IMG/VR virus record: IMGVR_UViG_3300040801_002079
Span: 124,001 to 188,000 of that record
DNA length: 64,000 nt
Strand: one strand, 5' to 3'
Shown one piece after another: positions 16,566 to 62,092 of this stretch (position 1 is its first letter; the number at the start of each line of letters is the position of its first letter). The notes beneath the pieces are model-generated. The model was not told the DNA's origin, made no database searches, and worked only from the letters and a program-made list of their open reading frames with translations. The position numbers and the translations under genes were made by a program.

Positions 16566-16931
16566 ATGTATACTGCATACGTATTAACAGAAAAATCTAG
16601 AAAGACCCTGTTCTTTCTTTTTCCACCAAAATATCCTGAGGTTATTGGTCACCATATAACCGAAACCTTCGGGGTTTCCAAAGATGCTGAAGCTCCGGAA
16701 ATGCCAACGCTTGTTGAGGTTGTTGGCTACATCGACAATGGTGATGGAGTTGAGGGATTCTTGGTGGAAATAGACGGGTCTAGTGATCGCCCATCTGGTG
16801 GTAAATATCACATTACATGGTCAATTGATCGTGATAAGGGATATAAGCCTGTTAATACTAATGATTATACAAATGATGCAAAACCGGTTAAGCCTGTACG
16901 ATTGCAGGTTGAACCCAAAGTGCTCCGGTAG
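16566..16931 (+). CDS. 2H phosphoesterase (cyclic phosphodiesterase-like)
   Basis: two HxT motifs, GHHITE and KYHITW, about 50 aa apart; its stop TAG lies inside the tRNA gene. Confidence 0.65.
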   Translation: MYTAYVLTEKSRKTLFFLFPPKYPEVIGHHITETFGVSKDAEAPEMPTLVEVVGYIDNGDGVEGFLVEIDGSSDRPSGGKYHITWSIDRDKGYKPVNTNDYTNDAKPVKPVRLQVEPKVLR

Positions 16932-16999
16932 CTCAGTTTGGTTAGAGCAAGAGCTTCTAAAACTCATGGTCGTGGGTTCGAATCCCGCCCGGAGCGCCA
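16922..16999 (+). tRNA. tRNA with CUA anticodon in canonical register (putative amber suppressor), encoded CCA
   Basis: 7-bp acceptor GCTCCGG/CCGGAGC, D arm GCTC/GAGC, loop TT-CTA-AA (16955-16961), T arm GTGGG-TTCGAAT-CCCGC, G73, CCA; anticodon stem has two mismatches. Confidence 0.8.
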
Positions 17000-39455: not shown

Positions 39456-40029
39456 GCCCGTACCACAAACCGACTATGATCCGCGTGATCCAATTGGAAC
39501 AGTGTATACATTTAGACATCCCGATGGTATGCGTGGCACCGTAACTGTATTAGAAAAAATTGAAGATGAAGCCTCAGGGGTATTTGTCGGAGTGAAGTTT
39601 TCCGAGGAAACCAATGATGCCATAATGAATTTTATTGAATCTCAGGATATCCCAAATCCTGTAACAAAAGATAAACTACATTGTACTGTTATGTACACAT
39701 ATAGTGATGCCCCTGATTTAATTGAAGAAAGTAGACCCCCTCTTATCCCCGCATGGAATGCTACACCGGATAAATTTGAAATATTTGAAACACAGGATGA
39801 TAATAATTGCTTGGTTTTAAGAATAAAATGTGATGAACTAACCGAAAGGCATGAGAAAATCATAGCGGATTACGGAGTTGTTTATACGCACGAGGAATAC
39901 AAGCCACATATAACATTATCATATGATTGTGGAGATTTCGATATTTCAACGTTGGACAAAGATGCGTTACCTGATGAAATCCTTATAACAGAGGAGTATG
40001 CATCATCGATTGATCCAGACTGGGTATAG
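39436..40029 (+). CDS. acb1: Anti-CBASS nuclease Acb1 / T4 gp57B-like 2H phosphoesterase with N-terminal extension
   Basis: VGVKFSEET...IPNPV...KLHCTVMY...YKPHITLSY...EEY...DPDW follows T4 gp57B along its length. Confidence 0.85.
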   Translation: MKLRHLKPVPQTDYDPRDPIGTVYTFRHPDGMRGTVTVLEKIEDEASGVFVGVKFSEETNDAIMNFIESQDIPNPVTKDKLHCTVMYTYSDAPDLIEESRPPLIPAWNATPDKFEIFETQDDNNCLVLRIKCDELTERHEKIIADYGVVYTHEEYKPHITLSYDCGDFDISTLDKDALPDEILITEEYASSIDPDWV

Positions 40030-40031
40030 TG

Positions 40032-40038
40032 ATAAATA
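40032..40038 (+). promoter_or_regulatory. T4-type late promoter driving the tmRNA
   Basis: ATAAATA just after the acb1 stop and before the acceptor piece. Confidence 0.7.
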
Positions 40039-40043
40039 AGTAT

Positions 40044-40328
40044 AACATTGTACGATCCATTTAAGGATTTATTGTGGACGGCGGTTCGATTCCGCCCATT
40101 TCCACCAAAAGCATACCTAATGGGTATATTTTATGATGGGAATGCACTGGTTTCGACATGGTAAGTTGGTAAATGAGGACAATGCGGCAACCGTGAAAGT
40201 CGTTAGGGTAAAACCAAAGAAGCAAAAAACTAAATGCAAACGATAGCATATATGATCAGGCCCTTGCCGCTTGATCGTGGGTTTAGCCAACCTTGAACCA
40301 GAACGGGTTAGGGGGGAGTAATCCCCCC
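40044..40328 (+). ncRNA. ssrA: Circularly permuted (two-piece) tmRNA; tag ANDSIYDQALAA
   Basis: acceptor piece with T arm and CATTTCC-A-CCA ends at 40107; coding piece starts GGGAATG at 40138 (G3:U70, A73); tag frame 40236-40274; terminator 40311-40328; late promoter 40032-40038. Confidence 0.9.
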
Positions 40329-40351
40329 GAATTTTATCAAAAGGGACTTCT

Positions 40352-45975: not shown

Positions 45976-46419
45976 ATGAAAAAAATAAGTAAAAAATATC
46001 CCTTAATTGTTGAATCACACCCCGATGATTATAATGGATACGAGTTCATAACTCTAATTCGCTATAATGATATCAACCATTTGACCATTGTTGATAATAC
46101 GGATAAGAAATTCATTAACTGCTATGTGCTGGACCTGTGTAAAACGGTTAATCTAGAAGAAGAAAGAATAATAGATGTTACTCAAGAATGGTACAACACA
46201 TCTAAAGATGCATATCCAATATCAATAGAGTTCTCCAAGCTTGGAATGACAGATGATGTGTCTAAGATTTTAAGAAGCTTCTCCATCGATTTTGTTACAC
46301 GAGTTATCGGACCTCTTCCACATTTCAGTATGAAAGGTGTAACTAAAGTTAGAAAGAGAAAGCGTAAAGATGTGCCTGAGGGAATTCGTATTGTACAAAA
46401 GAAGCTTAAAGATTATTAA
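45976..46419 (+). CDS. conserved jumbo-phage hypothetical protein
   Basis: TATAAATA 45960; basic C-terminus. Confidence 0.65.
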   Translation: MKKISKKYPLIVESHPDDYNGYEFITLIRYNDINHLTIVDNTDKKFINCYVLDLCKTVNLEEERIIDVTQEWYNTSKDAYPISIEFSKLGMTDDVSKILRSFSIDFVTRVIGPLPHFSMKGVTKVRKRKRKDVPEGIRIVQKKLKDY

Positions 46420-46780
46420 GCTTTGATAAAAGTCTGAAGGATTCTTTTACATCCTGATTATTAAACGTCTGAGCAACCCGCTTGGATGCTTCCAGAACTT
46501 CATTTCCCTCTTCCGAAAGCTCTCCTGTTTCATCAACCAAATTATGGTACTCAAGCATCTCCTTACCTCGTGTAGTTAATTCTAAGGCGTTTTCGGTTGA
46601 TCTTAGGGCACCAAGCTTCAATAATGTGTTTCTGGCAACAGAGAGGTTCTCGGAGGCCACAGTGTTCTCATATGCAACCTCTGGTGTGGGAGATACCTGA
46701 ACTATGACCAACACCGCTTTCTGTGTATCATTTAATATAGCAGTGTTAGGATTAATTAATTCTTTAAGTAGTGTTTTCAT
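46406..46780 (-). CDS. Putative head-associated protein
   Basis: MKTLLKEL N-terminus; winged-helix-like LTTRGKEML segment. Confidence 0.55.
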   Translation of the reverse strand: MKTLLKELINPNTAILNDTQKAVLVIVQVSPTPEVAYENTVASENLSVARNTLLKLGALRSTENALELTTRGKEMLEYHNLVDETGELSEEGNEVLEASKRVAQTFNNQDVKESFRLLSKLNNL

Positions 46781-47339
46781 TCTGTTGCCCAATCAAGTGT
46801 AACTGTAGAACAATAAGTAATGAGTAAGGTATCGTATGAGACTTACGCATATCACTATTTATCCGCTTAGTGTATAATTCTGGGCGAATAGCTTCCGGGT
46901 TCTCTAAATATTTTTCCAGCAGGCCAATCTTTCCGGGCCTAATTAATGCTAGAATGTCTGATAATTGCTGAACACTTCGGGGCTTCACTTTCTCCACAAT
47001 GTCAAAATGTTTACCAATATGGAATAACCCGCTAACAATTTTTTCACTTTCAAGTAGTGTCCAATCCGGCTCTTGCTTCAAAAGTGCCCGCATTTGAGCC
47101 TTACTCTTAAACTCTTTCAAGAGATTAAGATGTAGTAAATCAATCTTCAAGAAACCAACATCCTCAGCCTCTTTATAGGGTATGGCAGATAATTTAGTTT
47201 CGGGGTCTACAGGAATTTGCTGAAAATAAACACCAGCAGGGTGTTTTCTCAGTTTACCATCTTCGTTCATTGAGGCATAAACTAAATCAAAAACATCACT
47301 GGGATTAAAATCCGGGCGTAGATCGATATCAATGTCCAT
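46764..47339 (-). CDS. DNA polymerase III alpha (DnaE)-like fragment, C-terminal palm half
   Basis: begins MDIDIDL (catalytic DxD), KHPAGVYF, GFLKIDLL, ALIRPG, KSHTIPY. Confidence 0.85.
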   Translation of the reverse strand: MDIDIDLRPDFNPSDVFDLVYASMNEDGKLRKHPAGVYFQQIPVDPETKLSAIPYKEAEDVGFLKIDLLHLNLLKEFKSKAQMRALLKQEPDWTLLESEKIVSGLFHIGKHFDIVEKVKPRSVQQLSDILALIRPGKIGLLEKYLENPEAIRPELYTKRINSDMRKSHTIPYSLLIVLQLHLIGQQNENTT

Positions 47340-48069
47340 AATTCATTTCTATTTCTCGTTTTGTAACTATTAAATCTTCAACGCTTTCACAAAAGTTTAT
47401 CTTACTTTCATAATGTAGCATATTATACTCTTCCTGTAAAGCGAAGTTGTATTGCTGATCCTTCATGTCAAGTAAGTAAATAATAGTGTCATTGATGTTA
47501 AAGTTTTTTAACCTCATAGTCAATTCGAAAAATGGAAATTTAGAAATATCTATATCTGTTATAGGATTAAGAGATGATATCAATCCTCTCAATTGATTCA
47601 TATTCATGTCTTCGATATAAAAATCATCATCTAATCTGCTTAGCGTGATCGCTATAATGTCCAAAGCCTCTTGATATTTTTCTTCCAGATTTGGAGAAAA
47701 TCTAAAACTTATTCTTTCATTGTAATACTCGACAAGCTTTTGATGTAAGAATTGTTTTCCTGATTCAACATCCTTTAAAGACATATTAGATGAATAGTCT
47801 ATTAATATAAGACCACGTTCTTCTTCTAATTTATTAAGCTTTTCCTTATATTCTGAAATATTCTCAACAGAAAATCTATCAAGATTGCGCAAAGACTCTC
47901 TCCAATTGACCCATTGATTGCGAGATTGTGATGTAAGAGGGACATCCTGTAGTTGTGTCCAGTCACTTTCCAATAGGAGTCTGTTGCGTCTAGCAATAAG
48001 GCTGACCCATTTTATTTCTTCTTGATTTTTTGACTGCGAATATTTTAAATTCTTTATCTTTTTTATCAT
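47329..48069 (-). CDS. Phage tail assembly chaperone (Phage_tail_APC-like N-terminus)
   Basis: RNRLLLESDWTQLQDVP...WVNWRESLRNL. Confidence 0.75.
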   Translation of the reverse strand: MIKKIKNLKYSQSKNQEEIKWVSLIARRNRLLLESDWTQLQDVPLTSQSRNQWVNWRESLRNLDRFSVENISEYKEKLNKLEEERGLILIDYSSNMSLKDVESGKQFLHQKLVEYYNERISFRFSPNLEEKYQEALDIIAITLSRLDDDFYIEDMNMNQLRGLISSLNPITDIDISKFPFFELTMRLKNFNINDTIIYLLDMKDQQYNFALQEEYNMLHYESKINFCESVEDLIVTKREIEMNYGH

Positions 48070-48082
48070 GTCAAGGTCTACA

Positions 48083-50383
48083 TTATGCTGGCTTAAAGAA
48101 GAAATATACCGTGGCCCGTGTTAGGGTTGCATCGTATGTTGTCCAAACCGCAGGGAATGAAAGATTTGATGATCCGTAACTAGTCACTATACTCTGATTT
48201 ATATAGTTAGTGTTCTCAGCTTCATTATAATAAACCCTATAAAATGTTCGCAAATAATTGACCACATATCCATCAGGAACATTTATATCAAATCCAGTTA
48301 CATCTCCGTCATTGCCATCAATATCACTCGTTATAGATAAAGAGAACTTTTCACCGTCAACGAAGGTCGTGGTCCTACTTCCAAACGAACTGGTTCCTCC
48401 GGTTTGTCTAATATCTGCACTTAACGTAAATGATCTTTCTGGAGTCGGCGTTGGGGAAGGGCCATCTGGTGGTGGGGTTCCATCTATGTTCCAACAGAAT
48501 TGATTTAAATAATTACATATGTTTTTGCCTTCCATCCATCTAGTAGCAAAATCACCTGAAAATGAATCATTATGTATTATCTGAACCGCGCCATCTGGTA
48601 ACAACGCCGCACTATCGAATGTTACATCATTCATACTGAAGGTTCTAGTTCCCAAATTACAATTTCCGCTTCCATCAGAAACTCCTATATTTGTATACCC
48701 CATTGGTTGAGTTGAAGACTCACCAATCATTGCTAATAACTGATTTCCTGTAATTCCCACGGGTTCAAATATAAAGAGCCATTTTCTTCCGGGTCCACCA
48801 ATTTCTTGTAGATATAACCCAGCTTTACATATAGCATATTCCGATGTAGTTCTAGACATAGAACCAAAATTATCATTATAATTATTATATCCAACTACTC
48901 TTGTCGCGTTAGAGAAAATTTGCCCAGCCGGAACGGTGTCGCCTTCGGCTGGTGTTATAACGGAGCAACTTCCTGTAACAGGAGCATCATCTACTCCATC
49001 ATGATCCCAGCTTGAGTACCAATATGTCAATGTTCCGGGCGATGAAGGGAATGGCCCCTCAGTCCCCGGATTTGTTAAGTTTGTTCCACCCGCAGCACAT
49101 CCACCAACATATCCAACCGAACTAATATCAGATGATCCGGGTATCCACCATTGTCGGGTATTGCCAACACTATCAGTGAGAATAACTCTACCGTGGAATC
49201 TTACGGTCATGCTATAATTATTTTCAGTATTAAATTCCGCGCTATCAAATTTCAAACGAATATATGGTATTTCTCCGGGGGATATATTTGTACGCAATGA
49301 TCCAGTTCCGTCTCCACCGAAATAACTCTTTAAGACTGTGCTGAGGGGATATGCCGACCCCTGATAGTACGTGCCTCCACTTCCAACCTCAACTAAGCCA
49401 GAGGGATCACTTGTGGGAGATTGAATAGTGGCGAATACATTTTGGAAATCAACAGTGTAAGGTGGGACCCCACCACTAATGTTTTGTAATGAAAAATATG
49501 TACTCTGATCATATGCACTTTTTGCAACATTACCCTCAGTATCGATGTGTGATGTGTTCGTTCCGCCTCCGGGTCCGGGAGTTCCGGGATCACATGGTGC
49601 GGGAGATACATAGAGTCGCGTATCGACTCCTAATGGCTCTACTGGCTCGGGAGTATCGGTTGGAGTCGGTGATACCGGAGGTGAGGGGGGAGGCGTTCCT
49701 GCGGGGCTGCTAGTTGGTGTGACTGTAATTCCCACTGGAGGGGTTGGGGTTGGAGTAACCTCTGGTAAATCTGGGGGAGTAACCTGTTGCCCCAGATTGT
49801 TATTGCCGCGTATTCCTATAATTAAATAGTTTACGTAAGATTCAATAGTAGTGGTATCTCCTAACACCTTATAGTGCATGGTTACTCTTGCTTCAGAGTC
49901 AGTACCACAAGTCATTCCAGAAAATCCGGAATTATATGCTGCGGGTGCTACTGACCATATACATTCAGAGTATTCAAACTCTCGGCCCGTTACAGGGCTA
50001 ATGGGTTTAGGCAATTGCTGACCATGATATACTGTTCCCCAGTTTGCTGCAACATCATCGTAACTTGATATTGGAATCCAATATGTTCCATCCCAAAAAT
50101 ATAGCACACCAGATGTTGAGTTATACCAAAACTGTCCATGGGTTGGGTTAACAAGCAAATTCTCATGACTTTGCGATGTGTCGGGTGTTCCGGGAACAGA
50201 TGGGTTTTCAGGGCAAGCAAAATTTTCTAGCAAGTGTAATAGATTTTCATTAAGATATTCACCATATTCTAGATTTATTCTTCCAAACATAGCAACATCA
50301 ACAGAGGTTCTATTAACATCACCCTGTTTAACTTCTATTGGACTAGCACTAACTTGTGTAAAATCTATTTTATATGTTGACAT
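48083..50383 (-). CDS. Virion fibre protein, paralog 4 of tandem array
   Basis: shared FGR..LEYGE.LNENLLHLLENFACPE module, PT linker, unique C-terminus. Confidence 0.8.
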   Translation of the reverse strand: MSTYKIDFTQVSASPIEVKQGDVNRTSVDVAMFGRINLEYGEYLNENLLHLLENFACPENPSVPGTPDTSQSHENLLVNPTHGQFWYNSTSGVLYFWDGTYWIPISSYDDVAANWGTVYHGQQLPKPISPVTGREFEYSECIWSVAPAAYNSGFSGMTCGTDSEARVTMHYKVLGDTTTIESYVNYLIIGIRGNNNLGQQVTPPDLPEVTPTPTPPVGITVTPTSSPAGTPPPSPPVSPTPTDTPEPVEPLGVDTRLYVSPAPCDPGTPGPGGGTNTSHIDTEGNVAKSAYDQSTYFSLQNISGGVPPYTVDFQNVFATIQSPTSDPSGLVEVGSGGTYYQGSAYPLSTVLKSYFGGDGTGSLRTNISPGEIPYIRLKFDSAEFNTENNYSMTVRFHGRVILTDSVGNTRQWWIPGSSDISSVGYVGGCAAGGTNLTNPGTEGPFPSSPGTLTYWYSSWDHDGVDDAPVTGSCSVITPAEGDTVPAGQIFSNATRVVGYNNYNDNFGSMSRTTSEYAICKAGLYLQEIGGPGRKWLFIFEPVGITGNQLLAMIGESSTQPMGYTNIGVSDGSGNCNLGTRTFSMNDVTFDSAALLPDGAVQIIHNDSFSGDFATRWMEGKNICNYLNQFCWNIDGTPPPDGPSPTPTPERSFTLSADIRQTGGTSSFGSRTTTFVDGEKFSLSITSDIDGNDGDVTGFDINVPDGYVVNYLRTFYRVYYNEAENTNYINQSIVTSYGSSNLSFPAVWTTYDATLTRATVYFFFKPA

Positions 50384-50413
50384 CTATTATTCCCAATTAT
50401 CTGTATTTATCCA

Positions 50414-51784
50414 TTAAAGACAATCCGGACATTCATCACAATGTTCATAATGTCCATAGCTAATAGGAAGCTCCCAGTCAGTCGGCGTTCGATTATTTGA
50501 ACCCCCAACAGGTGTTGGCTCTCTTGGTATATACCAATTAACACTATTGCCTTCAGCATCTATTAGAATAACCCACCCTGACAATGTGTAGTTTATTCGA
50601 TATGTGTAAGTTGGATCGAAATTATCAGGGTTATCAAACTTAGGAGTAAACTTAACATATGGTAGAGATGTTGTATTTAGATTTGTGCGCAACCACGATG
50701 TATCCGACCCCACTCCTCCATAATATCTTATATCCATTGTCATTGGGGGCAGCGCATATTGTCGAGTCTGACTTTCCCCTGTTAAACTATACCACCCTGT
50801 TATCGGGCTAACGACTATCCATCTAAAGATTACTTGATACGGTCCATTGCCTCCTGATAAATCCTGTAAGGACACATAATATGGTTGCTCAACTTGATTT
50901 ATTTGTATTGATGGGCCACATGTGTTGTATAGTCTTATTCCGGTTCCTCCGGGTCCGGGCGCTCCGGGGTCTCCGGGAGATGGTGCAGTATATAATCTGG
51001 TATTAATGCCCAGAGGTTGAGGAGACGGAGTTGGTGTAACTTCGGCTGTAACTGTTGGGGTTACTGTGCTTGTTGGAGTTACAGTTGGTGTAAAATCAGG
51101 GGTGCTCGTCACGGTAGGAGTAACTGTTGGGGTTAATCCATATGTTGGGGTTGGGGTTGGAGTTATACCAGATGGAAGCGGTGGTGGAACTAAGCTTCCT
51201 TTGTTTTGATTCCCCTTTATTCCTATGATTAAGTAATTCGCTGTTCCGGGAAGTAGATCGGGTGGGGTGCCGTATTCCATTGTAACAATGGCATTGTTGT
51301 CTGTTGCGCAATTTACAACACTAAACCCCGTATCATATGTCGCAGGAGCCACACACCATATACATTCGTTATATTCAAACTCTTGACCACTTGTTGGGCT
51401 TACAGGTTTAGGTATCTGCTCTCCATGAAATATTGATCCCCAATTGGCAGCTACATCATCCATACTGCTAATTGGGGTCCACGCAGATTCTGTATAAACA
51501 TATAATGTGCCTTTTGTTGTGTTATACCAGAATTGTCCATTTATTGAATTATCAAATATATTATCAAATGATAAATTGGTGTCTGGGTTTCCGGGATTTA
51601 AAGGGTCTTCGGGGCAGGCAAAGTTTTCCAATAGATGAACAAGGTTTTCCTGAAGAGCGTCACCGTATTTTAATCGAATATATCCAAATAATGATATATC
51701 CGTAGATGTAGTATCAACAGATTGCTCATTAACCTTTATTGGAGCTAGGTTGATGTTTGTATATTGAACGGTATAAGTGGTCAT
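50414..51784 (-). CDS. Virion fibre protein, paralog 3
   Basis: same N-module; PT linker; Cys-rich end HCDECPDCL. Confidence 0.8.
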   Translation of the reverse strand: MTTYTVQYTNINLAPIKVNEQSVDTTSTDISLFGYIRLKYGDALQENLVHLLENFACPEDPLNPGNPDTNLSFDNIFDNSINGQFWYNTTKGTLYVYTESAWTPISSMDDVAANWGSIFHGEQIPKPVSPTSGQEFEYNECIWCVAPATYDTGFSVVNCATDNNAIVTMEYGTPPDLLPGTANYLIIGIKGNQNKGSLVPPPLPSGITPTPTPTYGLTPTVTPTVTSTPDFTPTVTPTSTVTPTVTAEVTPTPSPQPLGINTRLYTAPSPGDPGAPGPGGTGIRLYNTCGPSIQINQVEQPYYVSLQDLSGGNGPYQVIFRWIVVSPITGWYSLTGESQTRQYALPPMTMDIRYYGGVGSDTSWLRTNLNTTSLPYVKFTPKFDNPDNFDPTYTYRINYTLSGWVILIDAEGNSVNWYIPREPTPVGGSNNRTPTDWELPISYGHYEHCDECPDCL

Positions 51785-51802
51785 TCGATCCTCACCTTAT
51801 AC

Positions 51803-53353
51803 CTAGTCGTAACCAAGTATTCTTAACTCTGTCAGACATGAACCCGGACATATACTGCAATCATAATAGTGATTCCAAGTGCTATTAAATTTATATGTCG
51901 ATCCGGGGTTAACTCGTTGATTCGATCCTCCGGTTTGAGTTGCATCCTCGGTTAACCACCATGTAATAGATGTACCAACCGAATCTGTCGCTCTAATATA
52001 TCCCCATACTTCAGTCCAGAATCCAAGATAGCTTGCTTTATCTAAATCGTACCAAAGATCATCATTACCTGTATAGGTGTCAACCCTAGTATAACATGCC
52101 TCTCCGGGATCAACATTAATTCTAATTTCATTAACCCCGCTTGATTGTCGCGTTCCGCCACCATAATAAACTCTCAGTTCAGGCTCGACTGGAAGTGGAT
52201 ATGGATTAGGATCGGTAGGCCACATCATGTATCCAGTAGTATTATCAGTTCCAGCAGAATAGATATTACTCATATCAACAGTGTAAGGTGGAACGCCGCC
52301 AGATAACCCAACTAGATATACACTAACTGTTCTCTCAAGAGCATAAGAAAAATATAAATGTCTAAACGCTGCAACCGTTGCTGGGTCCTGATCGGGCCAC
52401 ACAAGATCGCCACACGAGTTTTTATGGTAAGTTGGTGAGCCACTACTAACGTCATTTGTGTATCCCGGTGAAGGGTACACATATAATCTAGCATCTCTGC
52501 CAAACGGCTCAACACTATTGGGTGGGGTTGATGCGGGTGTGCTCGTTGGCGTTGGCGCAAGAGGTGACGGTGATGGTGTAACAGAATTTGTGGGGGTAAC
52601 TGTTGGGGTTGCGCCAAATGTTGGTGTAGGGGTAGCAGTCGGTGCTGGTGTTTGGGTCGGGGTTATAACTGGGGGATTAATGTTATTAATTCCTCTGTTA
52701 ACATTTCCACGTATGCCAATAATCATGTAATTGGCAATACCGTTTATCAGCGTTGAGTCTCCCGTAACCCTGTATTGCATTGTGACCCGCGCATCATCAT
52801 CATCCGTTGAGCATACCATGAAGTCAATTTCATCATCATAATGATATGGACCCACCATCCAAGAACATTCTTCATATGTAAAGGTTGCACCCGTGCTTGA
52901 CACTGGAAGGGGAATCTGTTCCCCGTGTGCAATGGTTCCATAGTTTGCGGCTATTTCAGAAAATAAACTGAGGGGTACCCAAGTGCCAACATCATTAATC
53001 ATTTTATAAACAAAAAGATGCCCTTCGGTTGATGATGTAAGACCACTGCTTGCAGGAAATCCGGAATTGTACCAAAGCTGTCCTTCAATTGCATTTTCTA
53101 ATGTGTGTCGAATAGCTCCCTCTGTTTCAAGGGTTTCAGATTCAGAGCTAATAAAGGGGTTACCCGCATTCTGAGGGTCTTCGGGACAAGCAAAGTTTTC
53201 CAATAAATGAAGAAGGTTTTCATTCATTAATTCTCCATATTCCAATCTCTCCCTGCCAAATAAAGCAATAGCCAAGTCTTGGTTTATGGTTTTTTCATCC
53301 ACATTAGTGGATGGTTTACTTTTATCTGTTCTGTTAATTACATAAGTAACCAT
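51803..53353 (-). CDS. Virion fibre protein, paralog 2
   Basis: same N-module; PT linker; end DCSICPGSC. Confidence 0.8.
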   Translation of the reverse strand: MVTYVINRTDKSKPSTNVDEKTINQDLAIALFGRERLEYGELMNENLLHLLENFACPEDPQNAGNPFISSESETLETEGAIRHTLENAIEGQLWYNSGFPASSGLTSSTEGHLFVYKMINDVGTWVPLSLFSEIAANYGTIAHGEQIPLPVSSTGATFTYEECSWMVGPYHYDDEIDFMVCSTDDDDARVTMQYRVTGDSTLINGIANYMIIGIRGNVNRGINNINPPVITPTQTPAPTATPTPTFGATPTVTPTNSVTPSPSPLAPTPTSTPASTPPNSVEPFGRDARLYVYPSPGYTNDVSSGSPTYHKNSCGDLVWPDQDPATVAAFRHLYFSYALERTVSVYLVGLSGGVPPYTVDMSNIYSAGTDNTTGYMMWPTDPNPYPLPVEPELRVYYGGGTRQSSGVNEIRINVDPGEACYTRVDTYTGNDDLWYDLDKASYLGFWTEVWGYIRATDSVGTSITWWLTEDATQTGGSNQRVNPGSTYKFNSTWNHYYDCSICPGSCLTELRILGYD

Positions 53354-53526
53354 TATACTTCCTCATAACTGTCAATCTTTGAATGTATCATGTCGGATTT
53401 AAATTCGCCGTCTGATATCTCAAAGACTTCAATTCCCGAATCTGCTGAATTTTGCGCCGATACCCGCTTTTGTGCAGTTCCTATAATAACTTGTTCTCCA
53501 TCGATTTCTTTAACCAATAAAAACAT
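53353..53526 (-). CDS. 57-aa small protein missed by the ORF track ([16 protein letters not shown]...)
   Basis: ATG at 53526 overlaps the upstream stop; its TAA overlaps the downstream ATG (TAATG). Confidence 0.65.
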   Translation of the reverse strand: MFLLVKEIDGEQVIIGTAQKRVSAQNSADSGIEVFEISDGEFKSDMIHSKIDSYEEV

Positions 53527-54893
53527 TATAGTATTTCCCCGCTCCCCTCGACTGTTAATGCAAGCCTAATATCATCAGAGTCGCCTTTTGGTCCAGTTAT
53601 TGTTACAACTATAACCTGAGTCCATTCACTTCCTGATGTTGGTGGACCTAAACACCACGATTTAGTTGTGCCCAGATTACCCGATGTTGGCCCGGATGCT
53701 ACAGGATATGGAAATTCTTGGGTGGCGGTAAATGTATAATCTGATCCATCTTCTCCATCTCTAAATCCATTAACTACCCACTCACCATAAACTCCACATG
53801 ATGCTGCAACGACAGTTCCGTTGGAGTTTATGCTTATACATGCGGTTGAAGCCGTCTTAAGACAAGCATAAAAGCCGCCCTTAACATCGCCAGTTGGATC
53901 AACTGATAGAGATGGTGTAACCTCTGGTGTAACAGTTGGATCAGGCGTATTTGATGGTGTAACTGGAGGCGTTGGCAATGGAGTCTCCGTGGGGTCAGGC
54001 GTACTTGACTGCGTTGGTCCGGGAGTTCCTGCGGGCGTATTTGATGGAGTAACTGGGGGCGTTGGCTCTGGAGTATTTGTTGGTGTAGCAGTAACTCCGG
54101 GTGCGGGTGTATTTGATGGCGTAACAGTATTGGTCGGTGTAACTGTTGGTGTATTTGTTGGGGTTGGCTGTGGAGAGCTTCCGGGAGTCACCGTTGGGGT
54201 TGCGGTAACAACCGGTGTTCCAGTTTGAGTTGGCGTTGGTGTAGGAGTTGCCGCCTCTGGTAAACTTGGAACAGGGCCGATTGCTCCCAGATTTGCATTA
54301 TCCCTTATGCCAACAATCTGATAATTAACTAACCCAGTAGTTAAATCGGAACCAACGGGACGATACTGCATATTAACTGTTGCCTGATCATCAGTAGAAC
54401 AAACCATGTAGTTAATATCATCAGGGTAATTAAACGGGGAAACTATCCACGAACATTCTTCATATTGAAATACATATCCTGTTGTGGGACATACGGGCTG
54501 TGGCAATTGCTCACCGTGTGCAATCACTCCATAGTTGCCAGCAACATCACACCCTGTACCAAGTGCCGTCCATTCTGTTCCATTATATCGATAAGGTCTT
54601 TTATCCGTTGTGTTATACCAAATCTGTCCCTCAATAGGGTTTTCAAGAAGTGCGCCAAATGCATTGGCTAAATCTGGATTTCCGGGATTACCAGCATCTT
54701 CGGGACAGGCAAAGTGTTCTAATAAATGTAAAACATTTTCATTAAATATTTCACCATAATCTCGTTTTGTTTTACCAACGAACGCGATGTCGGCTTTATT
54801 TGTAATCAATTCACCCTTGGAAACAAAGATTGCATCTTTGCTGGCATCGGTAAAGTTTATTGTATAAAGATTTTGTGAGCAGTTAGTTGCCAT
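53526..54893 (-). CDS. Virion fibre protein, paralog 1
   Basis: same N-module; long PT linker; tandem late promoters 54923-54936. Confidence 0.8.
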
Positions 54894-54950
54894 AGTTTAT
54901 CCCAAATATAATATTTCCCTAGTATTTATTATTTATGCGATTCAGGATAA

Positions 54951-55619
54951 CTATAAATCTAACTGAGACAAGTAATTTTTGACCTCATTAATTGATCCTT
55001 TATTAACATCAAGTATTAATTGCCACTTATCTAAGTTTATAACAGACTCTATTAATTTCTGCTCTTCATAGTTGGTTTCATTCCTAACATATTCGTGAAA
55101 TTTTTTACTCAATAATAATGCCCAAGGGGATAAGTTTCTAGACTGTATCAGTTTTATCAAATCCTGTGGCTTCAAATGAGAATAAACCTCAGATATTTTA
55201 CACCCAAATGCAGAAGATAACCTCTCCATTGTTGTCAATGTTATGCGCAGATGAACCTTAGCGTCATTCTCTTTATCAAACTGGTTTATAAAGTATGAGT
55301 AGATATCATCATTGTACCAATGCTGTGGGAGTATTGAATCCTTTGCCATTAGTTCAATATACAACGACACATCCGGAATTCCCATTTTTAGTGCGTAGTC
55401 TGTAAATGTATAAAATACCTTATAATACTTTGACCCTATGAAGATTTCTTGAGAAGGATTAGGGAGGTTGCGCTTCTTAAACCATGTTTGGTAGTTTTTA
55501 TATGCCATCTTTCCACGAGGTGTCTTGAGTTCCCCAATACGAGTCTCCTCATCACACTTATGCTTGGTGTAATTTTCTTCTTTAATAAACTTAGTTTTAC
55601 AATATTCACATTCAAACAT
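54951..55619 (-). CDS. hypothetical protein with N-terminal zinc finger
   Basis: FECEYCKTKF...HKC; in the clamp-loader operon. Confidence 0.65.
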   Translation of the reverse strand: MFECEYCKTKFIKEENYTKHKCDEETRIGELKTPRGKMAYKNYQTWFKKRNLPNPSQEIFIGSKYYKVFYTFTDYALKMGIPDVSLYIELMAKDSILPQHWYNDDIYSYFINQFDKENDAKVHLRITLTTMERLSSAFGCKISEVYSHLKPQDLIKLIQSRNLSPWALLLSKKFHEYVRNETNYEEQKLIESVINLDKWQLILDVNKGSINEVKNYLSQLDL

Positions 55620-56067
55620 TTTTATATTCTTTCTTAATGGCTTCGATTTGATCCCACTCGCCTAATTCATCAATTATAGCTAACATGCTTTCCAGATTCA
55701 TCAACTCACTGTCTGCTTTAGCCTCGGCTGTTCCTATTTTATAATACTTTTTCAAAAGATCAACCGTTATTGGCCTCTTGGTTGGTTTAGATTTTTGTTT
55801 TTTCCATTTATAAAATTCAGGTTTATTATTCCCCGAAGAGCACAATAGGTTATAACAAAGTTCTGGATATCGATGAAGTTTAAATATATTTTGGTTTGCG
55901 GATGCTGCAAGCATCAATAGTTTTTCTTTGTCGTTCGTAAACGCCATCCACCTTAAGATAATATAAGGTGAAATTGTTTTTCTCTCTGCATCAGTTAGGG
56001 ACTGTATATAATTATAGTCCCCAACATCGACATGTTTTAAGACTTCAAATATGTCAATCTTGCTCAT
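55612..56067 (-). CDS. Clamp loader small subunit (T4 gp62-like)
   Basis: SPYIILRWM...FYKWKK...LLKKYYKIG pattern; near the RFC ATPase. Confidence 0.7.
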   Translation of the reverse strand: MSKIDIFEVLKHVDVGDYNYIQSLTDAERKTISPYIILRWMAFTNDKEKLLMLAASANQNIFKLHRYPELCYNLLCSSGNNKPEFYKWKKQKSKPTKRPITVDLLKKYYKIGTAEAKADSELMNLESMLAIIDELGEWDQIEAIKKEYKNV

Positions 56068-56371
56068 TAACTGTTAGCCGTTTATTGCAGAACTTACACA
56101 GAACATAGTCTCCACGATTTACTAAAAACTCCCGTGGATGTACACATTCTTTTGCAAGAAGATCACGTAATGCAATAAGTTCGTCAAGATGGACCTGTCG
56201 CTCCATTGTCAATTCGAGAATCTTTTCTTCTATCGGTTGAATATTCTCTTCAATCATGGTGGTCATCTTTTTATGCTTTCGTTTCCATGCAATACGTTCA
56301 TTCTTTGTAGCATGGTTTACAATTTTGGTAAATAATTCTTTGTCCGTCACGGCAATCTCCTTATATGTCAC
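56054..56371 (-). CDS. hypothetical protein
   Basis: coiled coil plus C-terminal ECVH...CKFC. Confidence 0.6.
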   Translation of the reverse strand: MTYKEIAVTDKELFTKIVNHATKNERIAWKRKHKKMTTMIEENIQPIEEKILELTMERQVHLDELIALRDLLAKECVHPREFLVNRGDYVLCKFCNKRLTVNEQD

Positions 56372-57308
56372 AAATTTTAGCTAGACACGCTGATAAGTTA
56401 AGTTCAGGTATGGCGCTGGTATCATGTATGGCAGCATAATGCGCCAATGTTATTACAGCCTTTCGCATATTCGATTCGTTGTTTGAGCATTTTTCAATTT
56501 CTTTCAGATTGTTATTTAAAAACCGATATACATTACCAATATCATCAGGTGAAAGTTCTTGGTAAATTAAATCGCGTATTGAAATCCAATCATTTTCATC
56601 AATTAACATTAGTATCTTAACAAACACTTCAATATTTTCAACCGATGGTGGATGTAAAACTTTACCATCATATGCTTGCTCAATACTCGTAATAAATTTT
56701 CGTAGGTCAGGAAATGCCAATTCCAAATGTGAATCCAAAATGGCAATCAGTTCACCAGAATCTACACTACTTAAATCCATACCCTGTGTATTGAGTATTT
56801 CTAGCACAATTCGTTTCATCTCTTGTTTACTCATACTTGTAAACATATATTCCGTACAGCGTGAACGAATCTCGGGGATAATTTTATGAGGCTTATTGCA
56901 TGTAAGAATGAACCGTGCATTCATATCCTCATCTTCCATCATTGATTTTAACGCTTCCTGTGCTTGTACGGTTAGCGCATCGGCCTCATCCAAAAAGACT
57001 AACCTGAACTTGCTCATGCTCATGGTGCTTATAAACGGTTTAACTTTATGTCGTATATCGTCAACCGAATTATCATCGCTTGCATTAAGAACAAGAACAT
57101 CAATTTCAGGGATGCCGATTTCATTCTGAAGAATATAGCGAAGCGTTGTTTTGCCCGTACCGCGATGTCCTGCTAACAGAAGGTCAGGGAAATCTTTTTG
57201 ATCTATATATTTCCTGAAATTTCGCTCAGTTGCTTCATCTTGAAATACGTATTCATCAATGGACTTTGGGCGATAAAGTTTATACCACCCTGTAGTTATT
57301 TTGCTCAT
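56361..57308 (-). CDS. Clamp loader ATPase subunit (T4 gp44/RFC-like)
   Basis: WYKLYRPKS, GHRGTGKTT, LNASDD, LDEAD, SRC. Confidence 0.93.
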   Translation of the reverse strand: MSKITTGWYKLYRPKSIDEYVFQDEATERNFRKYIDQKDFPDLLLAGHRGTGKTTLRYILQNEIGIPEIDVLVLNASDDNSVDDIRHKVKPFISTMSMSKFRLVFLDEADALTVQAQEALKSMMEDEDMNARFILTCNKPHKIIPEIRSRCTEYMFTSMSKQEMKRIVLEILNTQGMDLSSVDSGELIAILDSHLELAFPDLRKFITSIEQAYDGKVLHPPSVENIEVFVKILMLIDENDWISIRDLIYQELSPDDIGNVYRFLNNNLKEIEKCSNNESNMRKAVITLAHYAAIHDTSAIPELNLSACLAKICDI

Positions 57309-57361
57309 ATGAACTCCTATAATTCTAATATTTTATAAGAGTCTATTAGATATGTCAAGAA

Positions 57362-58393
57362 CTATGATCGGTTTATTTTTCCAAGATTTTCTCGAACAGA
57401 AGACCGCTTTATCTCATTTTCAATGCGAGTAACAGTATCAGCCAATGATTCGATTGCATCCGTGTTCTGTGAGTTCATTATAAGCTTTTTAAGATCATTT
57501 AAATCATCAGAACTAATGGATGGTTCAGAGGAAGATTGCGTCTCTTCAGGGACTTCTTCAGGGACTTCTTCAGGGACTTCTTCAGTATCCCCCATATGAC
57601 TCACCGCATTATCAATACTATCCACTGTGTGCACTCCTGCATCATCTATAACGTGCTTTGCTTCTTCAACAATATCATCTATAGCCTTAGCAGCCGTTGC
57701 ATTGGCCTTTTCTTCCTCTCGCTTTCTCAGGGCTATATTCGCAGCCAGTGTTAAACTAACCGCCAATGGATCGAAAACACCAATTATTATAAGAACAAAC
57801 CAGAATGTAGCTTTATCGGGATTCTCACCCAACACCTCTGCTACATATATAATAGGTCCAATTTTCGCCTCTGTTGTTAACACATTGCCCTTTAGCTCTA
57901 AAAGCTTAGCATCCGTGTCTTCCAGTTTCTGGATAATGTCCTGCTTTTCTTCCTCATATGTGCGGATAAGTTCCATTCGCTTAGTGATATAATCATCACC
58001 GGTTCTAGCAATGTCAGAGTTTATTCCATCTAATCTTTCTTGATATGATTGTCGCTGCTGCTCATAGATTACAATTTGTTCTTGTTGCTGCTTTAAACCG
58101 ATAGAGTCTGTCTGGTATGCGGCAGTTAGGAATCCAAAAATGCCCAACGATGTAACAACCATAAGAGTGAATACAGCAATAAATAAGTAAGTCTTAAGCA
58201 GTCTAGGTGTAGATGACCAATATCTATAGAGATAAGAGGCAGCAACAAGTTTTCCTACCTCAAGTGCACCACCCATGATTATAACAGGTATAAAAGAGGC
58301 TGAGAATATTTGCGCCAAACCGTAGACACTAAAAAACGCGGCAGACGATGCTACCGCGAATGCGCTTAGTATTAATAGTAAAATAAAACCCAT
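57362..58393 (-). CDS. Conserved T4-like-phage membrane protein (3 N-terminal TM, coiled coil, TM)
   Basis: AAFFSVYGL...LEVGKLV...GIFGFLT...IGPIIY...VFDPLAV; internal EEVP x3 repeat at about 57543-57585. Confidence 0.7.
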   Translation of the reverse strand: MGFILLLILSAFAVASSAAFFSVYGLAQIFSASFIPVIIMGGALEVGKLVAASYLYRYWSSTPRLLKTYLFIAVFTLMVVTSLGIFGFLTAAYQTDSIGLKQQQEQIVIYEQQRQSYQERLDGINSDIARTGDDYITKRMELIRTYEEEKQDIIQKLEDTDAKLLELKGNVLTTEAKIGPIIYVAEVLGENPDKATFWFVLIIIGVFDPLAVSLTLAANIALRKREEEKANATAAKAIDDIVEEAKHVIDDAGVHTVDSIDNAVSHMGDTEEVPEEVPEEVPEETQSSSEPSISSDDLNDLKKLIMNSQNTDAIESLADTVTRIENEIKRSSVRENLGKINRS

Positions 58394-58411
58394 GAGGGTA
58401 TTTATCTATTT

Positions 58412-58747
58412 TTAGGATGCTACTGGATTTTCCTCAGTAACACATACAACCTTTTCAAAGTCAGTAAACCAAAACTTTTCGGCATCATGAGCATCAGTCA
58501 GCGTCATAGCATTAGTCCAACCAAGAGCTTCGATAAGAATATACTCACCCTCTTGAATTAAACTCGTGTCCACATCTGGACCCAGCTTTAAAACCTTACC
58601 CCAACGGTCTTGATTAACCTGATTACTTCTATCTTCAATCAGGTGAATCCCGCCAGCAGACTTACTATGAAAAGCACTGTTTTCAATATCTTCTACAAAC
58701 TGAAATAAAATTTTTGTGTTAATCGGCTTTATTGTTTCTAAACTCAT
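58412..58747 (-). CDS. GroES-like co-chaperonin
   Basis: IKPINTKIL, SAGGIHL mobile loop, GKVLKLGP, GEYILI. Confidence 0.8.
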   Translation of the reverse strand: MSLETIKPINTKILFQFVEDIENSAFHSKSAGGIHLIEDRSNQVNQDRWGKVLKLGPDVDTSLIQEGEYILIEALGWTNAMTLTDAHDAEKFWFTDFEKVVCVTEENPVAS

Positions 58748-58748
58748 G

Positions 58749-59024
58749 TTATCCTCTTTTTTTAATTATTTTGCGTTTTTGATTTTTCATTGCTTCAGGC
58801 TTTTCTTCAGGCTCAGGTTTCGCCGCTTTAGTTTCAACCGGCTTATCCGTCTTGTCAAGCATTTTCTGAACTGCCCTCTTAGAGCCGCGCTTCCGTTTAG
58901 AGTACACAAAGTCTTCTCTATTTTTCACATCAGCGGAAACAGGCTTGTCGCCTATTTTTCTTTTAAGTTCCAGTAAATCAAAATCAACTACTTCGCCTTT
59001 TATACTTGTAGCTTTTCGTGCCAT
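58749..59024 (-). CDS. basic hypothetical protein
   Basis: GEVVDFDLLELK motif; late promoter at 59054. Confidence 0.6.
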   Translation of the reverse strand: MARKATSIKGEVVDFDLLELKRKIGDKPVSADVKNREDFVYSKRKRGSKRAVQKMLDKTDKPVETKAAKPEPEEKPEAMKNQKRKIIKKRG

Positions 59025-59056
59025 CGTTATAAACTCCCAATATCTCTTTTATATAT

Positions 59057-59653
59057 TTATGCTCTAAAAAAATCTGCGATATCAAGCTCATAGTAGATGC
59101 TATCAACATCATGAACTCCTATCAAATAAAGTACATATGAACAGCACGAGCTTCCCCTGCCTGTCCCCCATATTATTCCATTTTCCATAAAGGTGTCAAC
59201 AATGTACATAAGAGATTTTAATAAATCTGATAGCCCCCGTTCTTCCCATAGCTTCAGTTCCATGTTAACGCGGTCAACTCGCTCCATTATCTCAGTTTCG
59301 GTAAATGTATTACTGCGTAACTCGGATTCTAAACTATTGAATACAACATTATTTATCGATAACTCTTTGTATTCATTAGGGATATTCCAGTTAAACATTT
59401 CATCACTGAAATTAAGACTGGTTTTATTTTTTATCCTTTTCCCATCTTCCGTTAAATCATTAAAACGTTTAACAGAAAAATCTTCGGGATCAATGATAAA
59501 GCTATCAATCCAGTCATCCTCACCTGATAATATCTTATCAGCAAGCCCCTTTACGGTATATGATGAATCACCATCAAACCATAATATTCTTTTATCAAGA
59601 ATAGTGTATGGGTTAGATAAAGCTTGATTCGTAGTTTCCATCACTTGTGTCAA
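59057..59653 (-). CDS. DNA polymerase III alpha (DnaE)-like fragment, N-terminal palm half
   Basis: RVNMEL...WGTGRGSSCCSYVLYLIGVHDVDSIYYEL..DFFR matches the DnaE GRGS region. Confidence 0.85.
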   Translation of the reverse strand: MTQVMETTNQALSNPYTILDKRILWFDGDSSYTVKGLADKILSGEDDWIDSFIIDPEDFSVKRFNDLTEDGKRIKNKTSLNFSDEMFNWNIPNEYKELSINNVVFNSLESELRSNTFTETEIMERVDRVNMELKLWEERGLSDLLKSLMYIVDTFMENGIIWGTGRGSSCCSYVLYLIGVHDVDSIYYELDIADFFRA

Positions 59654-60096: not shown

Positions 60097-60585
60097 CTAA
60101 ATTAAATCGCCTATAACCATGTCCTTTAAATACTTATTATAGCTATCTGTGGGAGCAATGCAAGCCCACATATCACATCCTAGTGGATGACACAGCATCG
60201 TATTCTTAATAAGTGATGGCGTTTGCACGTTAGTATACGGATCATAGTTTATAACTCGCACAACATTTGGAACCAATTTTTCGGTTTTATGGTTATACAC
60301 AAATGCGGAAAACGTATGTTTTGTTAAATCTGAAAATTCAACCACATCAAGTTCTGATGTTTCAGGTGAGTATATTAATATATTCCAATCTGCTGGGGCC
60401 TCAATTGAATATCCATGTATGGATATGCGCAGAGTTTTAGCGCCTTCAAGTTCTTCATTGAGAACCAATTCTCTAAGAGTGAAGTCCATTATCTCAAGGT
60501 CTAATGCCCAGAAGTGACTGACCGGAAATGGTATATCAATATTATCAAGTATGATGGGGTCGTTATGCTCGTCAAGTAGAATCAT
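60097..60585 (-). CDS. conserved hypothetical protein downstream of UvsW
   Basis: 162 aa, overlaps the helicase stop. Confidence 0.65.
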   Translation of the reverse strand: MILLDEHNDPIILDNIDIPFPVSHFWALDLEIMDFTLRELVLNEELEGAKTLRISIHGYSIEAPADWNILIYSPETSELDVVEFSDLTKHTFSAFVYNHKTEKLVPNVVRVINYDPYTNVQTPSLIKNTMLCHPLGCDMWACIAPTDSYNKYLKDMVIGDLI

Positions 60586-62092
60586 CTGAAATGCCTTTAT
60601 ATTTTATTATATGTTTATGGTCTATAGTATGCCCTTCTTCTTTATAAAATGCAATACGTTCTCGTATATGTTTTTCCGAATAATATAAGTTGGAATAAAT
60701 GTCATAAACATTTACCACATCCTTATCATCTGCCTTCCTCAATCCACGCCCAAGTGTTTGAATAACTCGAACAAAACTCTTTCCAGCATCGACCATAAAA
60801 ATATTGAAAATTCTTTTAATATTTAATCCAACTGCTGCCAAACCATATGTTGTAATCATGATCACATCATCTCTTTCGGCAAACATGTTGAATTGTTCTT
60901 TTCTAACTTTTGTATTTTTGTCACCGTATATAAAAACAGAACCCGGAATCATTTCTTCCAACAGGGTTCCTTGTTTCTTAGTGTTAACTAAGATCACAGA
61001 GTTCCCGGATTGTTCAGTTTTTGCTTTAACAAATTCAGAAATAAACAAATTTCTCTCATAATTTTTGGATAAGTATCCTCGCTCATTAGCAAATTCAGGA
61101 TACAATGCTTTCTTATATTCAGAAAATGTTAGAGGCTTAGGGAATTTTTTACTAGGTTTAAAATTCTCCAAATATATATCATAATCCGGACGCAAATCTT
61201 CATCCAGTCCAAGTACGGTTAACACCATCGTGGATAACCATCCTTGATCAATTAATTCCTTAGCGGGAATCTCATAAAGTATTTGCCCCAATGAGCAACG
61301 CAAAGTGCGAAGATCACATGGATGTGGAGGAAATGTTCCGGTCATGCCCGTCTTCACATAACAATTGCTTCCATATTCATTTAGAATTTTATTAGCTTGT
61401 GATATGAAATTTTTACCACCATGACATTCATCCATTATTATATGCTTATACTTGCGAACAAAGTCTTCTTGATTCATTAGAGTTTGCCATGTACTGACAA
61501 CCACAGGATGATCTATATCTTTTTTAGAATCTCCCCAGAGACCAACATCTTTACTGAATTCATTAAACTCAAGAACAGTCTGGTAAATCAAATCTGTCGT
61601 GGGAACAATTATCAATGTTTCAAGTCCACAATGTGTATAGTACAGATCATGCAGAACCCAACAGCATACCGTCTTACCGGCACCTGTTCCACCTTTAATC
61701 ATTCCACCATTGTTCTGAGTTAATGCGTTTATTGCATTTACCTGATGATCGCCCAGTGTCCATCCAAAATCAGCAAGATAATGTTTATCAATTTTAGGCA
61801 CATTGAGTGAGATTTTATCTCTGGTATCTATAATTGATATTTCATATCCGAAATCCTTTATTATGGGAATAATATCAGGTAAGAGGTTGATGCAGACTTT
61901 ACCATTTTTCGTAAAGAATCGGTGATAACCATCCCATATCTTAGCTTTATATTTCGGGTTAAAAAAGTAGTTAGGTGTTTGCAGTTTAAAAGCGTCACAT
62001 ATAGCAGCATATTCACCGGGACCTAGCCCGATGACAACTGCGTCTACTTCATTTAATAATTTTATCTTTGCTTCTTTTTTTATTGTCTGCAT
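60572..62092 (-). CDS. uvsW: UvsW-like SF2 DNA helicase
   Basis: GTGAGKT, STWQTL, DECH, TGT, GLNIKRI, QTLGRGLR. Confidence 0.92.
   Translation of the reverse strand: MQTIKKEAKIKLLNEVDAVVIGLGPGEYAAICDAFKLQTPNYFFNPKYKAKIWDGYHRFFTKNGKVCINLLPDIIPIIKDFGYEISIIDTRDKISLNVPKIDKHYLADFGWTLGDHQVNAINALTQNNGGMIKGGTGAGKTVCCWVLHDLYYTHCGLETLIIVPTTDLIYQTVLEFNEFSKDVGLWGDSKKDIDHPVVVSTWQTLMNQEDFVRKYKHIIMDECHGGKNFISQANKILNEYGSNCYVKTGMTGTFPPHPCDLRTLRCSLGQILYEIPAKELIDQGWLSTMVLTVLGLDEDLRPDYDIYLENFKPSKKFPKPLTFSEYKKALYPEFANERGYLSKNYERNLFISEFVKAKTEQSGNSVILVNTKKQGTLLEEMIPGSVFIYGDKNTKVRKEQFNMFAERDDVIMITTYGLAAVGLNIKRIFNIFMVDAGKSFVRVIQTLGRGLRKADDKDVVNVYDIYSNLYYSEKHIRERIAFYKEEGHTIDHKHIIKYKGISDDST

Follow-up and report, generated by a model that had tools for sequence, protein, structure and literature searches.

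The 64-kb stretch of DNA analysed here (the window) comprises bases 124,001-188,000 of the 316,801-bp IMG/VR virus record IMGVR_UViG_3300040801_002079, in which direct terminal repeats are present. Two genes on its minus strand together correspond to the palm of the alpha subunit of bacterial DNA polymerase III (Pol III), the C-family enzyme DnaE. The first encodes the N subunit of a split, minimal Pol III alpha (194 amino acids (aa), 59057-59641), and the second encodes the C subunit (191 aa, 46764-47339), which begins with MDIDID and carries the catalytic residues D2/D4 and K65/D67 and a reduced finger. The two halves are separated by 11.7 kb and 14 open reading frames (ORFs) of at least 57 aa. 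The initial annotation of this DNA had described a palm divided over two genes without an intein, and this description was borne out: the N half matches E. coli DnaE residues 278-394, the C half matches residues 400-781, and the halves showed no Hint or intein domain. Each half is present as a single copy in the genome, with one match each for PF07733 and PF17657.

The reading frame of the N half had been given as 59057-59653. The frame is indeed open back to a TTG at 59653, but the ATG at 59641, which is also the start in the public gene call (P0003), is the likelier start. The protein ends in ...GTGRGSSCCSY...DIADFFRA and matches the Pfam profile PF07733 (DNA_pol3_alpha) past the cut-off (E 4.9e-9; residues 118-195 on profile positions 16-93), as well as phrog_11127 (E 6e-40). 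In a hidden Markov model (HMM) alignment, the profile of 120 N-half relatives is placed on E. coli DnaE residues 289-392, which covers the stretch from GRGS to ERFL. The AlphaFold model of the N half (mean predicted local distance difference test, pLDDT, 91.9) superposes with residues 84-194 on residues 278-394 of E. coli Pol III alpha (Z 12.4-13.2, root-mean-square deviation (rmsd) 2.2-2.6 A, 106-110 residues). An exhaustive fold scan of 48,161 chains returned seven at Z >= 8, all of them C-family polymerases, and the next best chain scored 4.5. Residues 84-194 thus form the helical half of the palm with the GxGRGS triphosphate-binding loop, a motif that is invariant across the 120 N halves; the invariant residues are G159, G161, R162, G163, S164, H177, D180 and S181.

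The same protein's N-terminal portion (residues 1-83, window ~59393-59641, minus strand) is a conserved, family-specific domain with an LxDRxLWFDGDSS motif. It has no Pfam match, no informative Atlas match and no counterpart in the PDB; the wide fold search with the N half was dominated by its DnaE-like part.

The C half matches phrog_11778 (E 3e-59), whereas its match to the Pfam DNA_pol3_finger profile is weak and below the cut-off (E 4e-4). Its model (pLDDT 94.3) aligns with residues 1-189 to E. coli residues 400-781 (Z 10.4, rmsd 3.6, 184 residues), and in the fold search the top 15 chains were all DnaE or PolC, with the next best at Z 3.6. The initial annotation had made its reading depend on the third catalytic aspartate. 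This residue is present: K65/D67 in the C-half motif LKIDLLHL correspond to K553/D555 in the E. coli motif VKFDFLGL. The finger motifs FQLES...RPG and NKSH also align with the C half, where RPG corresponds to R134/P135 and KSH to K166-H168; the HMM alignment places the LFH..RPG stretch on E. coli 596-640 and RKSH..Y on 752-767. In a set of 120 representatives, obtained by clustering at no more than 50% identity, K65, D67 and P135 are found in all 120, D2 and D4 in 119 each, R134 in 118 and H168 in 116.

The break lies inside the palm, in a short loop of ~5 residues equivalent to E. coli 395-399, between ERFL (~392) and D401. The initial annotation had located it after the equivalent of GRGS...ERF and before DIDID, which agrees with an N half ending in GRGSSCC...DIADFFRA and a C half beginning with MDIDID. 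Because the N half stops ~2 residues past the ERFL equivalent and the C half begins 1 residue before the DxD, the sequences leave no room for intein halves at the junction. Among the Rfam families, no intron was found in the window.

Compared with DnaE, the pair is severely reduced. The C half extends only as far as E. coli ~781, out of 1160 residues. A thumb-sized stretch is gone, as 57 residues (C-half 8-64) stand for E. coli 406-552, and so is most of the fingers, where ~30 C-half residues stand for E. coli 640-756. That PHP and clamp-binding regions are lacking, as had been noticed at the outset, was confirmed: no PHP domain was found in the whole 316.8-kb genome (PF02811, E <= 1), and the C half has no thumb, clamp-binding (beta-binding) or OB region.

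A structure prediction for the complex and a survey of phyletic co-occurrence had been proposed in the initial annotation as checks on the pairing, and both came out in its favour. The predicted complex of the two halves reached an ipSAE of 0.92 in three of three runs, versus 0.09 for the best control. Of 80 solved complexes 58 attained the mark that was applied to this score, as did 2 of 110 mismatched pairs; since alignments made for this analysis were used in the prediction, these counts apply only roughly. The pLDDT of the partner was 93, and at least 97% of the contacts were common to the runs. In the model the GRGS loop (N-half residues 158-160) is in contact with DIDID residues 5-7, an arrangement like that of a DnaE palm, and the family-specific N-half residues 1-83 contact C-half residues 39-54.

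The two genes also travel together. The N half is present in 11 of the 12 IMG/VR records of at least 244 kb that were picked for their C half, and in the exception, whose contig is linear, the C gene lies right at the end. Conversely, all six records of at least 56% completeness that were picked for their N half contain the C half. Alignment-based scans of IMG/VR detected at least 590 stretches encoding an N half; a scan with a single protein gave no locus for the N half and two for the C half. Among cultured phage records, tblastn found 99 with the N half and 96 with the C half, in the same genera and with matching counts per genus. The identities of both halves drop in step from near to distant relatives.

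Natural single-chain forms provide a further line of evidence. An exhaustive search with the C-half profile yielded 418 representatives at E <= 0.001. Among the best 150 of these 418, nearly all proteins are ~190 aa or shorter, and two longer ones join both halves. P0316 (375 aa) contains both halves in one frame and is matched by the N-half profile, N-terminal domain included (hhalign E 5e-23), and by the C-half profile (E 4.5e-35). A more distant fusion is P0377 (336 aa), whose gene overlaps a gene of the PF03090 Replicase family. Further fused forms, P0392 and P0393, are 78-81% identical and lie on other, independent contigs; together with P0316 they measure 375-376 aa. In the fused forms an 11-residue linker occupies the site at which the window genes are broken, and the catalytic residues are the same. 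The domain of residues 1-83 is retained in the 375-aa forms and absent from the 336-aa form. In a tree of C halves the three fusions of the 375-aa type fall within a 12-member clade, of which the other nine members are split (SH-aLRT 99), whereas P0377 is placed elsewhere among split forms with weak support (83). Since the fusions fall inside the split forms on this tree, they look secondary and would have arisen at least twice, with the reservation that the root is uncertain owing to the long E. coli branch.

The single-chain minimal Pol III genes lie on metagenome contigs at L015:1066-2193, L017:519-1649 and L016:3171-4181. On L017 the fused gene is followed by the same phrog_11637 gene and structural gene. 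On L016 it overlaps a 552-aa gene of the PF03090 Replicase family, and this copy may therefore come from a small replicon in which a primase-type initiator is combined with the polymerase. On another contig, L018, a 200-aa gene that overlaps the C gene was considered as an adjacent N half, but it turned out to be a phrog_11058 homologue.

Near-invariant catalytic residues, co-occurrence of the genes, a passing complex model and natural fusions are independent lines of evidence, and because of these it is well supported that the two genes encode the halves of one heterodimeric, minimal C-family nucleotidyltransferase. This had been proposed in the initial annotation and stands, with the activity as a prediction.

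The source of the window is an uncultivated T4-like jumbo myovirus of ~317 kb, an XacN1-like member of group 2.2 of the jumbo phages; the T4-like assignment follows from the presence of a gp23-type capsid gene (Gp23 match, E 7e-92) and a family B DNA polymerase (DNA_pol_B match, E 1.3e-34). The phage DNA was found in microbial-mat metagenome sequencing runs. The closest cultured relatives at both loci are the Xanthomonas phages XacN1 and Xoo-sp13, the Stenotrophomonas phages RAS14 and CM1 and the Ralstonia phage RsoM2USA, and the identity to XacN1 is 48% for the N half and 60% for the C half. Megablast of the 14-kb region gave no match among cultured phages, from which this phage has diverged too far in its DNA sequence. 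The window also contains a phage-encoded transfer-messenger RNA (tmRNA) at 39996-40331 (plus strand; Rfam beta_tmRNA, 98.6 bits; tmRNA_permuted, 123 bits at 40046-40274), and this betaproteobacterial type may hint at the host. The sole tRNA gene found by Rfam in the 64-kb window lies at 16922-16996 (plus strand). Outside the window, the genome has three matches to the Gp23 family (G000:C1:204487-205722, 217078-217758 and 229533-229643), probably the major capsid protein and paralogues such as a vertex protein.

The N gene is preceded by a gene for a UvsW-like helicase (60572-62092, minus strand), which places the N subunit within a replication module. Downstream, all on the minus strand, follow a 91-aa ORF (58749-59024) and a GroES/gp31-like gene (58412-58747); XacN1, 121Q and Atu_ph07 likewise have both in the interval from the N gene to the clamp loader. 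A 343-aa ORF lies between the GroES-like gene and the gene of the gp44-like AAA+ clamp loader (56361-57308, minus strand). The clamp-loader genes further comprise a 105-aa ORF (56054-56371, minus strand) and a gene for a gp62-like clamp-loader subunit (55612-56067, minus strand); as a group they always have their place shortly downstream of the N gene. Next comes the gene of a 222-aa phrog_11058 protein (54951-55619, minus strand) with an invariant N-terminal C-x2-C-x12-H-x-C (C2HC) zinc finger. This gene occupies the place where the T4 gene order would put the sliding clamp. As a candidate for the clamp it was rejected: the product is not recognisably one and is instead a phage-specific C2HC zinc-finger protein.

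Between the zinc-finger gene and the C gene lies a variable cassette (47329-54893, minus strand). It contains four tandem phrog_15511 paralogues on the minus strand (48083-50383, 50414-51784, 51803-53353 and 53526-54893; 766, 456, 516 and 455 aa), and among them a 57-aa ORF on the same strand. The paralogues have N-termini of ~250 residues in common and variable C-termini. The initial annotation had placed four fibre genes and the clamp-loader operon between the halves; the gp44-like and gp62-like genes and the four phrog_15511 paralogues agree with this, the paralogues being putative fibres. A tail-fibre-assembly-like gene (47329-48069, minus strand) completes the cassette, and its stop overlaps the start of the C gene by 11 nt. 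Together these genes resemble a cassette for receptor binding whose number of copies is variable.

Directly after the C gene a small ORF was found (46406-46792, minus strand), which is 43% identical to XacN1 ORF227 in the same position and is probably a real gene despite its TTG start and the absence of a PHROG match. Convergent to the C gene lies the gene of a 147-aa phrog_11637 protein with a basic C-terminal tail (45976-46419, plus strand). Scans for promoters and terminators and for the T4 late-promoter motif TATAAATA gave results at chance level only.

The initial annotation had described the halves as collinear and about 12 kb apart. In this phage, with both genes on one strand, that is correct, but the order and the distance are particular to the XacN1-like clade, and across the lineages neither is conserved (4-184 kb). 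In the XacN1-like clade and many IMG/VR genomes the N gene precedes the C gene by 4-33 kb. In the Rak2-like, GAP32-like and PA5oct-like phages the C gene comes first, at 31-44 kb, as it does in SCTP-2 at 116 kb. In Atu_ph07 the N gene comes first again, 182 kb from the C gene, and in some IMG/VR genomes the order varies with distances up to 99-184 kb. The cassette varies likewise: RsoM2USA has none at this site and its halves are 4.2 kb apart, whereas XacN1 has six genes and a separation of 15 kb. On the basis of these two phages, the 12-kb separation in the window is a conserved replication block plus a variable insertion.

The local context of each gene is conserved. From the N gene onward, a small ORF, the GroES-like gene, one ORF and the gp44-like clamp-loader gene follow in the window, XacN1, 121Q and Atu_ph07, whereas in RsoM2USA the first small ORF is missing. 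The C gene is followed by the convergent phrog_11637 gene, and the phrog_11058 zinc-finger gene is usually found just upstream of it. In other clades the C gene lies ahead of primase and helicase genes: a primase and a DnaB-type helicase are encoded next in the Rak2-like phages, PA5oct, SCTP-2, Atu_ph07 and Slicko01. In 17 IMG/VR genomes all four families (both halves, phrog_11058 and phrog_11637) are single-copy. In 12 of these 17 the phrog_11637 gene is convergent to the C gene and at most 1 kb away, and in 16 it is at most 7 kb away; four genomes with this linkage have their N gene at 55-184 kb. In several phages the 3' ends of phrog_11637 and the C half overlap by 9-26 nt. The products of phrog_11058 and phrog_11637 may be accessory subunits or factors.

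Taken as a whole, the pair is probably an active two-subunit enzyme that acts on DNA, its subunits being the halves of one minimal nucleotidyltransferase of the Pol III alpha type. The two halves would assemble non-covalently. From the N subunit would come the helical half of a Pol-beta-like palm, including the GRGS loop, by which DnaE binds the triphosphate of the incoming nucleotide; the 83-residue family-specific domain of this subunit would, according to the model, pack on the partner. The C subunit would contribute the beta-sheet that bears the three metal-binding carboxylates (D2, D4 and D67), as well as K65 and a shortened finger in which the FQLES-like, RPG and KSH motifs are retained. 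The pair retains all catalytic parts of the C family, and its genes belong to the replication modules of a phage that also has a complete family B replicase; for these reasons we favour a role as an accessory DNA polymerase, which would make short stretches of DNA during replication or repair. Such a second polymerase could carry out short-patch synthesis, for example primer extension or gap filling.

Several observations weigh against this interpretation. DnaE holds the primer-template DNA with its thumb and clamp-binding parts, and with these parts missing it is not certain that synthesis is templated and processive. When the C half was compared with the PDB by sequence and by profile, DnaE was not among the matches, and the homology of this half to DnaE is drawn from its PHROG profile matches, from the fold predicted for it and from short motifs. 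Since DnaE is a solved single chain, the score of the complex may in part stem from a DnaE palm that the model has memorised, and it indicates likeness and not binding. The synteny with replication genes, phrog_11058 and phrog_11637 may be an inherited order of core genes. The phage DNA was seen in none of the RNA runs checked, and no biochemical, genetic or expression work on any member was found in the literature.

The zinc-finger protein phrog_11058 and the basic-tailed phrog_11637 protein might assist the polymerase. We regard it as a tentative possibility that the split Pol III core is part of a larger, phage-specific accessory polymerase, in which these two proteins supply the DNA-holding functions of the missing thumb and clamp-binding domains; both keep their place beside the C gene even in genomes whose N gene is 85-184 kb distant. 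If so, T4-like jumbo phages would have a replisome with two polymerases, of family B and family C, that works with the adjacent clamp loader.

On balance unlikely is an active two-subunit nucleotidyltransferase other than a templated DNA polymerase, such as a terminal transferase or end-modifier, an enzyme that adds primers or tails, or a maker of nucleotide signals, as is the case for many other enzymes with the Pol-beta fold. The lack of the thumb, the index, ring and little fingers and the clamp-binding and OB domains would fit such a non-processive or template-independent activity, as would the complete family B replicase that the phage already owns. However, the finger motifs specific to the C family (FQLES-like, RPG and KSH) are near-invariant, the genes always sit among those for clamp loader, primase and helicase, and the gene of one fused relative (P0377) is translationally coupled to a gene of the Replicase/primase family.

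It is very improbable that the halves act separately, for instance by binding or disturbing the host Pol III or parts of the replisome, and do not form a single enzyme. The genes are far apart and probably in different transcription units, and the C gene is coupled here to the tail-fibre-assembly gene, but the strict co-occurrence, the parallel divergence of the halves, the passing complex model and the existence of natural fusions all speak for one enzyme, as does an active site so complementary that each half would be useless alone. Covalent joining of the products by a split intein or by RNA trans-splicing can hardly be maintained. There are precedents in the intein-split DnaE of cyanobacteria and in the family B polymerase that was reported to be split by an intein in MIJ3, a relative of PA5oct, but the window pair has no spare residues for intein halves, no Hint domain was found, the window contains no intron family, and the order of the genes is reversed in other clades. 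That the ORFs are decaying, functionless remnants of a captured dnaE, in line with an earlier annotation of the N half as 'truncated' in the phage CBB paper, is effectively refuted by the conservation pattern, with intact frames and near-invariant catalytic residues at 30-60% overall identity across 418 representatives at E <= 0.001 and at least 590 N-half-encoding stretches in IMG/VR.

The split arrangement itself was published in 2021 for this phage group, and the window pair is a further member. The initial annotation had stated that small PolIII-like genes had been noted in T4-related jumbo phages, which is correct but falls short of the literature: Iyer, Anantharaman, Krishnan, Burroughs & Aravind (2021, Viruses 13:63, PMC7824862; sections 3.4.1 and 3.5, Fig. 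3b) explicitly described, for the jumbo phages of group 2.2, a minimal Pol III alpha that is split, encoded by separate, distant genes and likely to be reconstituted. In their description an N-terminal NTP (nucleoside triphosphate)-binding unit and a C-terminal Mg- and template-binding unit are separate proteins, and further Pol III domains are absent. These authors suggested that the enzyme acts alongside the family B polymerase when strands are synthesised or repaired, and they put its minimal core forward as a model of the ancestral bacterial replicase. Before that, a 'truncated' Pol III alpha of 172 aa had been noted in the 2017 paper on phage CBB. The window pair shares with the family of Iyer et al. 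the stand-alone GRGS-bearing NTP-binding unit, the stand-alone metal-binding and finger unit, the distant genes, the family B polymerase, the gp23-type capsid, the jumbo genome and the absence of other Pol III alpha domains. Nothing essential differs; the window copy comes from an uncultivated microbial-mat phage and has the XacN1-type order of N gene, clamp-loader genes, zinc-finger gene, fibre cassette and C gene.

What the present analysis adds is the break point at residue level, a passing complex model, quantitative co-occurrence, natural fused forms, two linked uncharacterised genes, and the variable order and distance of the halves versus their conserved local context. The genes occur in ~100 cultured jumbo phages, including Rak2-like and PA5oct-like phages that are considered for phage therapy, and the role of the enzyme in this very widespread phage group is a directly testable question, for which the break point, the natural fusions and the complex model give clear constructs for biochemistry.

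With the bacterial replicases DnaE and PolC (PDB 2hnh, 3e0d and 3f2b) the pair has in common the Pol-beta-like palm, the GRGS, the DxD and third Asp, the conserved Lys, and the RPG and KSH motifs. Those enzymes consist of one chain of ~1160 residues, whereas the window enzyme has two chains and ~385 residues and lacks the PHP, thumb, index, ring and little finger, beta-clamp-binding and OB domains. To our knowledge it is the smallest known C-family polymerase core. The split DnaE of cyanobacteria is likewise a C-family polymerase made from two distant genes. The cyanobacterial halves, however, carry intein halves and are spliced to a full-length DnaE, and their break lies elsewhere; in the window pair there is no intein, and the break is inside the palm, between ERFL and the DxD. 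The unsplit minimal Pol III proteins (P0316/P0392/P0393 and P0377) agree with the pair in both modules and in the catalytic residues, but are made as one polypeptide.

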